Shown: positions 25,280 through 47,200 of the stretch, piece by piece | Numbering within the stretch: the first letter of the stretch is position 1 | Layout of the letters: each line of letters starts with the position of its first letter | Assembly (NCBI RefSeq): GCF_041956535.1 | Contig: NW_027192196.1 | Span: 923,823 to 987,822, forward strand | DNA from: Calcarisporiella thermophila CBS 279.70 | Lineage: Eukaryota > Fungi > Calcarisporiellomycota | Direction of reading: 5' to 3' | Length of the DNA: 64,000 nt | Notes under the pieces: generated by a model | What the model was told of the DNA's origin: nothing | What the model saw: the letters and a program-made list of their open reading frames with translations, nothing else | The model's database searches: none | Position numbers and translations under genes: made by a program

Positions 25280-26714
25280 TCACGGACCAAAAATTCGTCC
25301 ATCGCCTCCTGCTCCTCCAAGCGCAGATATCATTGTCGTCGGCTGTCGTAGTTCCTTTAATCCCACGAAACCTCTTCTATCACGTCGGTTCATGAATTTC
25401 CTCCAATTTGCCTTCAATCTTAGCAATAGCCGGTCCACCTCTCGTTGCTGTTGATCATCGCTTAGAATAGATGCAAGCACGCTTGTCATCTGGAGCATTC
25501 GTGCAGCAGTATCAGTGACGGGTATACCAGATTCAAAATCAATGAACAATTTTGCAAATACATCTTCAAGTCGTTCCATCATCGGGTAGATTACATGATC
25601 ACGAAAACTTTTAAGAGCCATTGTGCGGACATTTGGCAGTTGTTGGTGTAGAGTATTTAAGAACTTGGTGGAAGATATTTCTTGTTGTAGCGGGAGGAAA
25701 ACACCCTCGAAATAGGGAAGTACAGTCCCAAAAAAGAATGACCATAGCTCAACTAGGCGTGACACGAGTTTCTCATCGTTAACCCCAAAAAGCTTCGCAG
25801 AAAGTGTAAACATCCCATTTCTTAGTAAGTCGTCCACATCATCAAAGAGAGAAGGAGAGATCGGATCTGTCATAGAGCGTCTAAAGCAAGCACAATTGAT
25901 AGAAATAAAAAAAAGAAAAAAAAGTAAATCATCTTGTTGAATTAAAATTAAGAAATACCTCTTACCTAACTAAGTTATTCAAATCTTCGATGCTTCCTTT
26001 GATACCTTCCCCATTAAAGAGAGGTAATACTTTTACGCAAAGACTCTGCCACGCATCGTCTTGGAGCTCAGCAAATCTCTCCATCTCACGCGCCATCACT
26101 TTCGCGTCAAGTGTCCATAGTGATTTCTGAAGTGTCGCAGAAGCAATTGCTAATGGTGAAGCAGGACGAGATGAATCCTTTAGTGAGGAAGATATGTGAT
26201 GTGGGTGATGCGATGGGTGAAGATTTCGTTCCGAGAATGCAGGACTTGCAGGAACAGAGGGGGAGAGAGCAATAGAAGGAGAAGGGAAGCCAGTCAGGGA
26301 GTAAGATGTGTTGCTTCTTGCAGTGAGGGGGACACTGGTCAGAGTTGGAGACGGGAGACGTAGAGAGTGCGAGCGATGTCTTTCTTGCTTAATTGGTGGC
26401 TTTAAAGGAGGTGGGCGGGGTTTACGCTCAGTAGAAGGCGTAGGTTGCTGTTGCTGGGATGGACGTTGTCGATAGGGGTGATGGCTACTATTGGTAGTGT
26501 GTGGTTGATGTTGTAATCGTGCATCCTGTTGCTGGTGATATGGTGGAAATGTAGATGTAGGAGCCGAAGTCCCGAGGCGATCGAAATCTAAAGCTTGCGA
26601 GGGAGGAGAAAATGATTGAGGAAGAGAATTCGCAGGCGATGAGGAAGAGGAAGGAGAGGCATCTGCAAGAGATGTGGTTGTTGTGGTAGGCGATTCAGGT
26701 AGATAGGTCTCCAT
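25280..26714 (-). CDS. BIT61: TORC2 subunit Bit61/PRR5 (HbrB domain)
   Basis: DDAWQSLCVKVLPLFNGEGIKGSIEDLNNLVR|...LVELWSFFFGTVLPYFEGVFLPL...ARMLQMTSVLAS; Ser/Pro-rich N-terminus; one intron. Confidence 0.88.
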
Positions 26715-26825
26715 GCTTGGATTAGCGATGATATTCAGAGAGAACCATTACATTTTGGCCATATATGATTTCTTACTCCGAAATTTCTACGTCATCACTG
26801 GGGTTGGACAATATTAAGGTATCAA

Positions 26826-26831
26826 ACGCGT
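26826..26831. promoter_or_regulatory. ACGCGT (MCB-like) element in the divergent BIT61 / putative telomerase RNA promoter
   Basis: AAACGCGTG followed by a T-tract, ~75 bp upstream of the RNA's terminal helix. Confidence 0.45.
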
Positions 26832-26904
26832 GTTTTTTTTTGGTTCTTTATCTGCTACTATCTCTTCTACTGGCCATGGAAGGGAGCAGATCAGATTATC
26901 CTTA

Positions 26905-27549
26905 AACCAGAAAACTCTTTTCATTCCTGACTGCTTGATCCGGAGCCGTTTTCTTGACCAAGAGTGTAGTCCTCTTTTATGCATAGTCTAAGGCCAATCC
27001 CTCTGGGATTCCTAACCCTAAGTGTTTAACGAGATAATTCTGCCTCATTATCATTCTCCGTTGGTGAGATTGGAGTGAGGGATAAGAATTTTTCTCGCTT
27101 TTCGGTCTGCTTTAACGGTTTGCGCGCTCCTTGTGAACTTAGCCCTCTTTTCGCAATGAATATGGCGATAGTTCTATAACAGGGTGCGTTGTCGGCCTAG
27201 GACCCCAATCAAAATTTCCAGTGTTCTTGCGATCCTTTTTGACTGGAATCAAACTAACTCTAAAAACGGATCGTTTCCTTACTATGCGATTGGGCTATTC
27301 TGTTGGGCTTTTTATTGCTCGAGGGTCAAGTGTGATTCCGCTAGTATCGAAAACGACAACCTGGGCGAGTCACGGTCGATGTTTGGGGAAATGGCGAACT
27401 TCGTGGGTCACCATTAAAGGCTTGATTACCTTGCTCTCCCGGAAAACAACGACGTATTCCGCCGCTTGTCTGTTTTCCAAGTACTAGGTCCGAGTTGGGA
27501 AATGACTGTAGTGTTTCTGGCATAATTTGCCTGCAGGCAACTTTTTTTT
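26905..27549 (+). ncRNA. Putative telomerase RNA (TER/TR), ~640 nt
   Basis: Template CCUAACCCUAA 27011-27021; boundary hairpin AAUCCC-UCU-GGGAUU 26996-27010; core-enclosing helix GCAUAGUCUAAGG 26981-26993 / CCUUACUAUGC 27277-27287; pseudoknot 27216-27273; CR4/5-like junction 27385-27439; terminal helix 26907-26933 / 27493-27520; U8 tract 27542-27549. No credible protein ORF here. Ends inferred from the structure. Confidence 0.85.
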
Positions 27550-28073
27550 ACACATCAAAGAAAATGAAAGAGAACCACCGCATTATTGAGAAGAATGTTT
27601 AAGGAATCATTGACCAATGCTTAATTATTTTAATTATAGAAATACCTGTGAAGCTTAGAATTGAAACTACTATCTGAAACTGCAGGCATAGAATGCTTCA
27701 GCCCGAGTCTTAACAACAGCTAGCTTTGGTGTGGCTTAATAATATTTGTATTAAACTATATTACTAAGGATATATCTATTTTTGATGCCTTATTTTCGAT
27801 AGTTAATAGGATTTTCTGGCATCCAGTTGATAAGCAATCCATGCAGGGATGTAATTTTTATTATCTCAATATTTTCTAGAGCTTTTTTTTATCACATTTT
27901 ATTCTAAATGAGTTGTATGGTACTATCCAAATGATACGTCCCTATTTTTCAGTTGATATATTTTAATTACTCTTGAATTCGTTTATGATAATATATTCCA
28001 ATAATCAGATTTATTGATGCATTAATTATTCAAGTAATCCTTTTTTATATATATAGTAAAACCCCAACTGTTG

Positions 28074-29481
28074 TTATTTTACAATAATAGATATTTGTAC
28101 CATAAGATCAAGTAGCTGCAGATGTTCATCTGCCCCGTCGACAAGATATTTATCTATCTGACTAATCGCTTGCGAAATTTTGGCTTTCTGAATGGTTGTG
28201 AGAAGTTCGTCTTTGGCAATACGGTCATGTAGCTTCAAAAAGCATTATTGAGTAAAATCCAATCTTTGAAGAGCTCTAAAGCAATCTTACTTGATTTACT
28301 ACTTGCGCGACGGAATATCCGGAATAAATTATATCACGCACCACATTATATATTTCATCGTATGTTGCATGGAACACAGAAGTTAGTCGTTTTATCACTT
28401 GCTCGGGCACAACACCAGCAATTTCTCGAATTGAATCAGAGGTAATTTTTTTCTCACGGTGCAATCTATATGCGCTCTGCAGAAACATGATTGCCCTGCG
28501 TAAATCTCCCTCTGAGGCGCTAATGAGTTCGTCCAGTGCCTCAGGTTCACAAACAACACCTTCGGCTTGACTGATCATCTCGAGCCGAGTACGCGTGTTC
28601 ATAATATCGAGCGGTTTGAACCGAAACTTAGCACAACGTGAAGCTAGTGGCTCAATTATTCTAAGATGCTATAAATATCAGTCGCTAGTAACAATGAGAG
28701 CAAAACTTAGCTTTACATGCCTTGTCACATAATTGCAAATAAGACAAAATCGAGTCACTTTTGAGTAGGTTTCCATTGTTCGTCGAAGTGCAGATTGTGC
28801 GTCGTTTGTCATTGTGTCAGCTTCGTCTAGAATAATAATTTTAAAAGGTGGACAAGGATATCCGCTAAAAAAATATTCAATACAGTTAGTAAAAGAGCTA
28901 TCTAGTTTTTTTTTTTTAAGTGCGAACCTGACTCCTTGGCCAATTGCTGTTCTTGCAAAATTCTTCACCTTCTCACGTATAACCTGTATGCCACGCTCGT
29001 CCGATGCGTTTAATTCCAATACTCTAGTGTGCATTAACTCAGGTCTAAGAATATGATAATCTAAATTTAAATTCAATACAAAGTCTTTCAAAAATGGATT
29101 AATTTACCCAAATAACTCGCGTGCCAAAGCTAGGATTGTCGAAGTTTTACCAGTCCCAGGTGGACCATAAAAGAGCAAGTGAGGAAGCTAGTGGGAAGGT
29201 ATGTGAGAACAGAATATGGAAATAAAAATGTATATTAAATAAATACATTATTGGACTCTATTGTTTTCTTTAGGACTTGCACTGCCTGATCTTGAGCGCT
29301 AATGTCGCTCATATTTTTCGGTCGACTGATAAGTATTATCAAAAATTTTCATTTGAGTGATGTTCAAAATGCTGATTTAGGAGAGTAGGATAACATACTA
29401 TTTCTCTATCCATGGTTGATCTACTTTTGTACCGCTCGACACTTGTGTCGCTGCTGATCGCACCTGGAAAAAATTAGACAT
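28074..29481 (-). CDS. RFC2: Replication factor C small subunit (yeast Rfc2 / human RFC4 type)
   Basis: QPWIEKY|[79 protein letters not shown]. Confidence 0.95.
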
Positions 29482-35911: not shown

Positions 35912-36098
35912 CAGCCTAATCCGTATGTCTCGTTAGAATTGGCAAAATAAAAAGAATTTGTTTTAATCATTATTCTAAATCAGCTTTTATTTTATATATT
36001 CTATTTTATACAACATGTTCGAGAAAAAAAAAATTGTATATATAAATGCAAGTATTGATTAATATTCTGTAATGAACTCTGTATTCTGGCTCGACTTA

Positions 36099-44200: not shown

Positions 44201-47200
44201 CTCTTGATACCCGTGAAAATCGTCATGTCGCGTTTGTTCGTGAATTTGCCAGCGTAGTGTCCATATTCCAGGATAAAGTGGACGGAGCCATCTCAGTGAA
44301 TGAGGAGATCCACCGTGCACTCGAAGATCTTAAGATGTGTCCCTATCAAGCGGATAAATTTGATAGCAACCTGAGTAAAATTCAGAAGCTAATCGACCGC
44401 CTGAATCTGGAATCATATTCCAATCTTGATAGCTGGGTTGCACAATTGGATGCTCGAGTTGAATCAGTGCTTACCCAGCGCCTGCAACAAGCTATTAAAT
44501 CATGGACCTCCGCCTTCCTTCAGGTGGAAGAGCATAGTCAGGAAGCAGATTACGCAGGCGACGCGGTAGTCAAAAGCGGAAGTAAACGCAAAAGAAAAGC
44601 AATTGGTAAAGGCGATAATATAGAGGCAGCCGCGCCTGGTAGCAAGTCTGAGATGCGGCCTACGCTCAAGACACTTGTGCATGAAATCCGCATTCGTAAT
44701 CAGGTTATGTACCTTGACCCGCCGATCGAACAGGCGCGCGCCAACTGGTTCAGTCAGCTCCATGATTGGCTTGCAGTGGTTTGCAATCTTCCGCGTATTC
44801 AGAGTTCCCGCTATGAAATTGGGCTTAATGTCGCAACCCCAGGAGTGAATGGCGAGCTAACGAATTACGTGAATTTGCTTACGTCTTTACCCGATGGTAG
44901 CCTTGAGGGTGCCTATTCCATAGTCGAAAACAAGGTTCGAGAGGTTTCGGAGTATGTTGGCATCTGGCTTCAGTACCAGTCACTTTGGGATCTTGAATCT
45001 AGCTATGTGATCAAGATTTTGGGTGAAGATCTCGCTAAGTGGCAACAGATTCTCTTGGAGATCAAGAAAGCACGGGCAACCTTTGATAACTCTGAGACCG
45101 AGCAGTCATTTGGACCAATTGTGGTCGATTACGAACAAGTGCAGAGTAAAGTAAACGCTAAATATGACCAGTGGCAGCGCGAGATTCTAAATAAATTCGG
45201 AAGTCTGCTTGGTGGGACCATGCGCGAATTTCATTCAGCTGTATTACGCTCTCGCCTCGAGCTTGAGCAGCATTCGGTTGAAGGAAGTTCAACCAGCGAA
45301 GTTGTTACCTTCATCACTTTTGTCCAAGATCTTAAGACAAAAATTGATAAATGGCGACGAGACGTGGAGATTTTCCGCCAAGGTCAAAAAACACTCGAGC
45401 GTCAGCGCTATCAATTCCCTAATGACTGGCTCTACGTGGATCAAGTGGATGGCGAGTGGGCTGCATTCAATGAAATTCTCACGCGGAAGAATAATGCCAT
45501 CCAGGAACAAATCGCGGGTCTTCAGATGCAAATCATTGCTGAAGACAAGATTGTCTCACAGAAAATTCGAGATATAGTCGACGAGTGGGAGAAGAACAAA
45601 CCTGTCCAAGGGGACATTAAGCCAGATATCGCTACCAATACCCTTAATATCTTTGAGGGTCGTGTAATTCGCCTCAAAGAGGAATATGAGATGGTATGTC
45701 GTGCCAAAATTGCACTTGGTCTCGATCAGACTACCGATGCTCGCCTCGACCCTGTGCTCGAGGAGTTACGCGATTTGAAGACAGTCTGGACTGAAATCTC
45801 TAAGATATGGCAATCTGTAAACGAAATTCGAGAGACCCCGTGGTCTTCAATTGTACCTCGCAAGCTCCGCCAGCAACTCGATAATTTGCTTGGCGCTCTC
45901 AAAGAGCTCCCAAGTAGTATGCGTACCTATGCAGCATATGAGTATGTGCAAGACGTTCTTCGCAATTACATCAAAGTCAACCCACTGCTTTCAGACCTAA
46001 AGTCGGAAGCACTTCGAGAGCGGCACTGGCGTAACCTCTTCAAAACTCTGCGCGTGGAAGGTCGCATCACCATGTCGGAGATGACGCTTGCTAACCTCTG
46101 GGATCTTGATTTGCGGAAAAATGAGCAGATTGTGCGTGACGTTATTATCACTGCACAAGGTGAAATGGCGCTTGAGGAGTTCCTCAAAGACGTGAAGGAG
46201 ACATGGACAAACTATGTTCTTGATCTTGTCAACTATCAGAATAAGGTAAGCGGCCTTTTTGTGAATCCTTTTGCTAACCTAGGATCTTGACTGTCAATAT
46301 ATAATAGTGCCGTTTGATCAAAGGAGCAGCTTGGGATGATCTCTTCAATAAATGCGGCGAAAATATCAACTCTCTTACTGCAATGAAGCTGTCGCCATAC
46401 TACAAGGTGTTTGAGGAGGAGGCTTCTGCATGGGAGGACAAACTCAATCGCGTACACGTGTTGTTCGACGTTTGGATCGATGTTCAACGTCAATGGGTGT
46501 ATCTCGAAGGGATCTTTAGCGGAAGCGCTGATATCAAACATTTGTTACCCGTTGAAACATCCCGCTTCCAGAACATTAATTCGGAATTCCTCACTGTGAT
46601 GAAGAAAGTGTACAAGTCACCATTTGTGTTGGATGTACTCAATATACCCAATATCCAAAAGTCACTTGAGCGTTTGGCAGATCTGCTCTCAAAGATCCAG
46701 AAGGCACTCGGCGAGTACTTGGAACGCGAGCGCTCCTCTTTCCCCCGCTTTTATTTTGTTGGCGATGAGGATCTACTTGAAATTATCGGCAACAGCAAAG
46801 ACATAGTTAGGATCCAGAAGCACTTTAAGAAGATGTTTGCTGGAGTTGCCAATCTCCTGCTCAATGAGGACGCAACTGTAATTCGCGGTATGACTTCACG
46901 TGAAGGAGAGGAGGTGGTGTTCAAAACGCCCATTTCGCTTGTGAATGGCCCTAAAATTAATGAATGGCTCACGAGTTTTGAAAAAGAGATGCGCACAACC
47001 CTTGGACTACTCCTCGCTGAATCTTTTACGGATATGAATAGCTTCTTCCTTGCTGAAGAACTTTCAACCGAAAATATGATGACATGGATTGATCAATATC
47101 CGGCTCAGCTTGTGGTACTTACAGCCCAAATTGTGTGGACTGAATTAGTGGAGAGATCACTTACCTCGATGCACGATGGCAATCGGTCCGACGTTGGGCC

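Follow-up and report, generated by a model that had tools for sequence, protein, structure and literature searches.

A candidate telomerase RNA core in the zygomycete fungus Calcarisporiella thermophila

Overview of the candidate RNA

The 64,000-nucleotide stretch of Calcarisporiella thermophila DNA that we analyzed (hereafter, the window) carries an H-type pseudoknot that, judging from its sequence and surroundings, is probably the equivalent of the P2b/P3 element in the core of an active telomerase RNA. That the locus is either a telomerase RNA or a derivative of one appears likely. Among fungi, telomerase RNAs have been described for Ascomycota and, in Ustilago, for Basidiomycota; the candidate would thus probably be the first telomerase RNA from a zygomycete fungus, outside these two groups. 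Our literature search found no zygomycete telomerase RNA, and a figure published in 2022 gives zygomycetes without one (PMC9564094). We can propose only tentatively the most specific reading, in which the locus encodes a working zygomycete telomerase RNA, the smallest in fungi, with an animal-like core that produces TTAGG from CCUAACC by means of a 2-nucleotide realignment.

In published descriptions, a telomerase RNA core is closed by an enclosing helix; inside it are a P1.1 helix marking the template boundary, the template itself, and a pseudoknot of contiguous helices whose upstream loop is rich in U (PMC3592445, PMC8480181). The template-adjacent P1.1 helix is regarded as the ancestral boundary element (PMC8480181). 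Possible counterparts of all these parts are found on the forward strand of the window within 307 nucleotides (26981 to 27287; Table 1).

Table 1. Features of the candidate locus and of the telomerase protein gene (window positions unless a contig is given)
Feature	Sequence	Position	Strand	Remarks
Core-enclosing helix (P1-like), 5' strand	GCAUAG-uc-UAAGG	26981-26993	+	
Core-enclosing helix, 3' strand	CCUUA-CUAUGC	27277-27287	+	Begins 3 nt past pseudoknot end
Template-adjacent hairpin (P1.1-type boundary element)	AAUCCC-ucu-GGGAUU	26996-27010	+	Six perfect pairs
Template-like 11-mer	CCUAACCCUAA	27011-27021	+	Sole match in window
Two predicted hairpin domains		27030-27097, 27104-27203	+	From MFE fold of 26981-27287
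Pseudoknot stem 1	UUCCAGU / ACUGGAA	27216-27222 / 27242-27248	+	7 Watson-Crick pairs
Pseudoknot loop 1	GUUCUUG	27223-27229	+	Enclosed by stem 1; four U, C interrupting
Pseudoknot stem 2, 5' strand	CGAUCCUUUUU	27230-27240	+	Within stem 1
Pseudoknot stem 2, 3' strand	AAAAA, bulged C, GGAUCG	27262-27266, 27267, 27268-27273	+	
Pseudoknot connecting loop (loop 3)	UCAAACUAACUCU	27249-27261	+	13 nt, A/C-rich
3' part of GC-richer island		27288-27550	+	Ends in hairpin UUGCCUGCAGGCAA + U8, 27527-27550
HbrB-like gene (left neighbor)		25280-26714	-	Two exons, PF08539 on both exon ORFs; intron GTAAGA/TAG
Replication factor C small-subunit gene (right neighbor)		28074-29091	-	Pfam RFC lid and C-terminal domains, ORF 28279-28602
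TERT gene		C15:208880-209509	-	Telomerase_RBD (PF12009) in three exon-like pieces

Structure of the template-pseudoknot core

The pseudoknot had been described in an earlier note, and its stem, loop, and bulge coordinates and letters all proved correct when they were checked again. Because the four strands of stems 1 and 2 do not overlap, the two stems are compatible with each other. Stem 1 has a duplex energy of -8.0 kcal/mol. A wobble pair between G27241 and U27261 is possible; it would extend stem 2 to 12 bp, leave zero unpaired bases between the helices, and shorten loop 3 to 27249-27260, and the contiguity of the helices is conditional on this pair. Nested folding chooses stem 2 in an 81-nucleotide fragment (z = -2.27) and stem 1 in a 568-nucleotide context, whose fold does not stand out (z = -1.40).

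Stem 2 presents its U-A tract at the helical junction, below the U-rich loop 1. At the level of sequence, the locus has an H-type pseudoknot on the 3' side of the template, and the upstream loop, which is U-rich, faces this tract. The four U residues of loop 1 could face A27262 to A27266 and form a triple helix.

The helix that encloses the core comprises 11 bp, arranged as six plus five pairs with a 2-nucleotide bulge, and has a duplex energy of -10.6 kcal/mol. Its existence had been claimed previously, with closure only 3 nucleotides downstream of the pseudoknot, and the pairing of 27277-27287 with 26981-26993 bears this out. Just inside the 5' strand of this helix is the boundary-type hairpin, which directly abuts C27011, the first base of the template, and whose pair probabilities in ensemble folding are 0.66 to 1.0. 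The template-like 11-mer follows on the same strand as the pseudoknot and ~190 nucleotides upstream of it. Its bases are predicted to be mostly unpaired (pair probabilities of 0.07 to 0.41), as is the whole of 27011-27029 in the same ensemble. Masking of CUAAGU (27018-27023) by ACUUAG (27137-27142) was considered and discarded, as ensemble folding keeps the entire 11-mer accessible.

When the core (26981-27287) is folded without constraints, the minimum free energy (MFE) is -85.6 kcal/mol (z = -2.47), and two of 100 shuffled sequences fold as well. This same predicted structure forms the enclosing helix, the abutting hairpin, the two hairpin domains, and stem 2, and it leaves 27011-27029 single stranded.

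Likelihood of chance occurrence

A generic scan for pseudoknots, requiring seven perfect pairs in stem 1 and, in stem 2, no fewer than 11 bp interrupted by one bulge at most, detected two examples in the real window, versus 0.51 to 0.65 per dinucleotide-shuffled 64-kb window. Because shuffled windows contain generic pseudoknots at a rate of ~0.5 to 0.65, the pairing alone is not beyond chance. The other site that passes the generic threshold (35933-36010, + strand) is A/T-rich, has a gap of 14 nucleotides at its junction, and is compatible with chance.

A telomerase-like layout was defined by three features: the U-run of stem 2 lies at the junction, no more than two junction bases are unpaired, and loop 1 has 3 to 10 nucleotides, of which at least four are U. 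Under these criteria of layout and rarity, which were fixed partly post hoc, after the element had been seen, and which somewhat overstate significance, none of 200 shuffled windows contained such a layout, even when stem 2 was relaxed to 9 bp. Elsewhere in the genome, 212 kb of real sequence contained no pseudoknot of similar strength, and far laxer thresholds yielded only one weak case composed entirely of A and T.

The elements around the pseudoknot were assessed in the same manner. Enclosing helices with the same geometry and 11 or more bp are present in 0.4% of real-genome samples (p = 0.004) and 0.1% of shuffles. A perfect hairpin of at least 6 bp located 0 to 2 nucleotides upstream is found at 3.8% of random genome positions (p = 0.038). 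The 11-mer is not informative by itself: it occurs 21 times in the genome, versus 28 times for a reversed control, and the motif alone is therefore at chance level. Three of the 21 copies reside in telomere arrays and 17 at other sites, and the remaining copy is the candidate locus. A telomerase-like pseudoknot is absent from all 17 other nontelomeric CCTAACCCTAA sites, and just one of them carries a hairpin of as little as 5 bp. Thus, among vertebrate-type template sites, only the candidate locus passed the matched control.

A rough and partly post hoc joint estimate, in which 4 × 10^-6 per nucleotide is the rate of generic pseudoknots, gives 18 sites × 600 nucleotides × 4 × 10^-6 × 0.004 × 0.038, or ~10^-5 chance loci per genome. 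If the 7-mer CCUAACC alone is counted as the template, the joint expectation from chance becomes ~5 × 10^-4 per genome. Chance is a weak explanation of the full architecture.

Relationship of the template to the telomere repeat

The telomeres of C. thermophila consist of (TTAGG)n and are found in the correct orientation at the 3' ends of contigs 4 and 67 and at the 5' ends of contigs 10, 13, and 38. No (TTAGGG)4 was found in the 28-Mb assembly, and TTAGGG units are confined to the bases of arrays, with two on contig 67 and one on contig 38. One TTAG unit is present at the base of another telomere array. The telomeres of Rhizophagus irregularis and Mucor are of the TTAGGG type (PMC10234402, PMC11258239), and TTAGG is therefore a derived state in C. 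thermophila. A search of the literature on Calcarisporiella telomeres found no paper.

The 11-mer CCUAACCCUAA corresponds to 1.8 copies of TTAGGG, and ordinary alignment rules predict synthesis of TTAGGG. Only CCUAACC (27011-27017; 5 + 2 nucleotides, or 1.4 copies) fits the TTAGG repeat of the genome. Because CCUAA recurs at an offset of 6, realignment involves 5 bp in the 6-nucleotide register versus 2 bp in the 5-nucleotide register. A period of 5 nucleotides is possible only if the terminal GG pairs again with C27016-C27017 and CCUAACC alone is used. The telomerase-type interpretation put forward in the earlier note is supported in part: the resemblance in pseudoknot layout holds, and the surrounding architecture goes far beyond chance, but the template predicts TTAGGG in an organism whose telomeres are TTAGG.

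This discrepancy of one base is the chief argument against the candidate and at the same time its most interesting feature. Possible readings of the conflict are that the template is used in a noncanonical manner, that there is a local single-base error, or that a second telomerase RNA performs the bulk of synthesis. If the CCC run had one C fewer, the sequence would be CCUAACCUAA, which is exactly two TTAGG repeats, and a single-base assembly error in this run would remove the conflict equally well. The two genes inspected in this regard (dynein and EFL1) gave no sign of an indel-ridden assembly: the dynein intron junction shows no defect, and the annotated EFL1 protein aligns to the window in separate blocks. 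An early reading, in which TTAGG telomeres refute the candidate, was dropped after the tests of the architecture.

Other potential templates exist in the genome. Two internal 17-mers of sequence ATCTAACCTAACCTAAC, each with 3.4 TTAGG repeats, are located on the reverse strand of contigs 9 (301332-301348) and 6 (1070415-1070431), while ~0.05 such 15-mers are expected by chance. No telomerase-like pseudoknot was found around either 17-mer. The copy on contig 9 resides in ~1.8 kb without long ORFs, a region that folds worse than its shuffles (z = +1.48) and that has no Rfam match. Both sites were rejected as alternative templates, given the missing pseudoknot and the unstructured region on contig 9, and they are probably interstitial telomere repeats.

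Several minor observations concern similar words. The sequence CGATTCCTAACCTAAT on contig 15 (334968-334983, + strand) has 14 nucleotides in common with the 3' strand of the candidate's hairpin plus the template minus one C. It would thus resemble the candidate in context while offering a template of two TTAGG-type repeats; a 14-mer match has a probability of ~0.1 to 0.2 of arising somewhere in the genome, and this one may be a coincidence. One phase of a TTAGG-type 10-mer has 208 matches in the genome, telomere arrays included. An intron of ~60 nucleotides in the dynein heavy chain gene (window 46245-46310, + strand) has GTAAGC, a CTAAC branch site, and a TAG acceptor; such branch sites may inflate genome-wide tallies of telomere-like CTAAC words.

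Genomic context

The HbrB-like gene on the left is transcribed away from the candidate RNA, and the 3' end of the RFC gene on the right faces it. Other fungal genes flanking the locus encode a dynein heavy chain and EFL1. The interval is a GC-richer island in which GC content is 42 to 49% until 27550 and then falls sharply to 23 to 34%. No Pfam match was obtained for the short ORFs of the island, and the minus strand of this stretch has about ten AUGs.

The 3' part of the island folds no better than its shuffles (z = -0.43); its MFE structure includes a junction that bears a 4-bp stem and an 8-nucleotide loop. Exactly at the drop in GC content there is a perfect small hairpin, UUGCCUGCAGGCAA, followed by T8, which could mark the 3' end of the candidate RNA. 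On its 5' side, this hairpin (27527-27550) is overlapped by a weak Sm-like AAUUUG. Transcription by RNA polymerase III is unlikely because of internal T5 runs. The genome also has a gene for TERT, on contig 15 (Table 1).

Proposed mechanism

If the candidate is a telomerase RNA, its gene would be a single-copy locus that yields a plus-strand transcript of roughly 570 to 650 nucleotides, between the HbrB and RFC genes. TERT, encoded on contig 15, would bind the template-pseudoknot core. The pseudoknot would position the template, possibly via U·A-U triples contributed by U27224, U27225, U27227, and U27228, and the abutting hairpin would halt reverse transcription at C27011. Synthesis of TTAGG would use CCUAACC only, with 27015 through 27011 being copied after the terminal GG has paired again with C27016-C27017. 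The additional CUAA might, speculatively, be what remains of a TTAGGG-type template, as implied by related fungi.

Alternative explanations

The template conflict disappears if the locus is a paralogue or relic, derived from a telomerase RNA, that has kept a TTAGGG-type template while another, TTAGG-type RNA makes most of the telomere. We consider this scenario unlikely, and likewise its corollary that the copy is idle or rarely active (for example, adding TTAGGG at the bases of arrays). It does agree with the TTAGGG telomeres of related fungi, with the restriction of TTAGGG units to the bases of two arrays, and with the existence of internal TTAGG-type sites, namely the 17-mers on contigs 9 and 6 and CGATTCCTAACCTAAT at C15:334968. 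However, all four helices of the candidate are perfect, which argues for current selection and not decay. Moreover, no paralogue is detected at E-values up to 10, and the contig 9 site is unstructured and without a telomerase-like pseudoknot. No organism is firmly known to use two telomerase RNAs whose templates differ, which also counts against a relic.

Two further explanations dispense with telomerase altogether. Chance complementarity in intergenic DNA, upstream of HbrB and downstream of RFC, would account for an 11-mer at chance frequency (21 versus 28), generic pseudoknots at ~0.5 per window, an unremarkable 568-nucleotide fold (z = -1.40), and a template mismatched to the telomeres. It is nonetheless a rather improbable account, because the joint expectation is ~10^-5 per genome, or ~5 × 10^-4 with the 7-mer only, and because the whole layout is recovered by the unconstrained MFE structure within a compositional island that is sharp-edged. 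We give very little credence to another structured noncoding RNA that is unrelated to telomerase, or to a long 5' leader of HbrB on the minus strand, even though the GC-richer island is without a Pfam-matching ORF and no telomerase-specific second domain was found. An exact 11-nucleotide telomere-type template in a single-stranded stretch right after a hairpin would be very unlikely in an unrelated RNA, and no other Rfam family matched. As for a leader, about ten upstream AUGs on the minus strand would be odd.

Comparison with known telomerase RNAs

The candidate has the same order of elements as vertebrate telomerase RNA (human; RF00024), namely enclosing helix, template, and pseudoknot. The human P2b/P3 pseudoknot has the candidate's layout: stem 1 and a U-rich loop precede stem 2, in which the 5' strand closes with a U-run at the junction and the 3' strand consists of an A-run, a single bulged pyrimidine, and a G+C-rich segment (PMC3592445). 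In addition, the candidate's template is a permutation of the vertebrate 11-mer. However, the candidate has no sequence or covariance-model match to the vertebrate RNA, and its boundary is an abutting hairpin, whereas the vertebrate boundary is P1 acting through a linker. Loop 1 of the candidate has four U residues with a C interruption, its host has TTAGG telomeres, a CR4/5 P6.1 hairpin was not found, and an H/ACA 3' domain was not seen by eye.

The telomerase RNAs of echinoderms, mollusks, and sponges, like the candidate, have a P1.1 stem-loop directly 5' of the template in a P2/P3 core closed by P1, and they are likewise a few hundred nucleotides in length (PMC8480181). The candidate differs from these nonvertebrate animal RNAs in that its host is a fungus and no H/ACA domain was seen.

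Among fungi, the Neurospora crassa RNA (RF02462) resembles the candidate in that its core combines enclosing and boundary helices with a TTAGGG-type template and a pseudoknot of contiguous helices, and its minimal core of 295 nucleotides compares with 307 nucleotides here (PMC3592445). Known fungal telomerase RNAs are 900 to 2,425 nucleotides long (PMC8480181), whereas the candidate would be roughly 600 nucleotides. Also in contrast to the RNAs of filamentous ascomycetes, no conserved P6/P6.1 junction was found in the candidate, and it has no Rfam match. A search of 26950-27560 for a P6.1-type hairpin (4-bp stem, NUNGN loop) found none; some accepted telomerase RNAs also lack P6.1 (PMC11892584, PMC8480181). 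The lepidopteran sfTR, which builds TTAGG telomeres, also has a P1.1-bounded template ahead of a pseudoknot and no CR4/5 (PMC11892584). This RNA is 135 nucleotides long and synthesizes TTAGG repeats in activity assays (PMC11892584), whereas the candidate's template has one C too many.

If the assignment is correct, a compact core in Mucoromycota that is closed by P1 and bounded by P1.1 would support the view that this layout is older than the split between fungi and animals. Searches for the telomerase RNAs of other early-diverging fungi could also start from it. That template and telomere differ by one base raises the testable question of how the repeat register is set, and the locus may capture a switch from TTAGGG to TTAGG without a change in template sequence.

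Searches for related sequences

The Rfam models RF00024, RF00025, RF01050, and RF02462 gave no match in the window at the gathering threshold, and none in 26500-28000 at E ≤ 10. Neither a DNA search of the genome with E-values up to 10 nor a pattern with one C removed detected a paralogue, and the locus is therefore single copy.

In EFL1, the one conserved gene compared to gauge the distance of relatives, the ORF is 97% identical to a C. thermophila protein; the next-best proteins are ~54% identical (Rhizophagus, Radiomyces, and Gigaspora), and those of Umbelopsis are 51 to 53% identical. Because the next-best identity is only ~54%, there are no close sequenced relatives. Similarly, a search with the exon 1 ORF of the neighboring HbrB gene retrieved distant proteins only. 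A Logan contig and the HbrB locus of Umbelopsis nana exhibited neither synteny nor the template motif.

A metagenome scan for the 17-mer GGATTCCTAACCCTAAG returned 21 contigs, none of which is similar to the locus beyond 17 to 19 nucleotides. Seven of these 21 contigs were rejected as telomerase RNAs, as they belong to a conserved A-rich family extending over more than 1 kb. This A-rich family resembles a dispersed repeat of some other genome.
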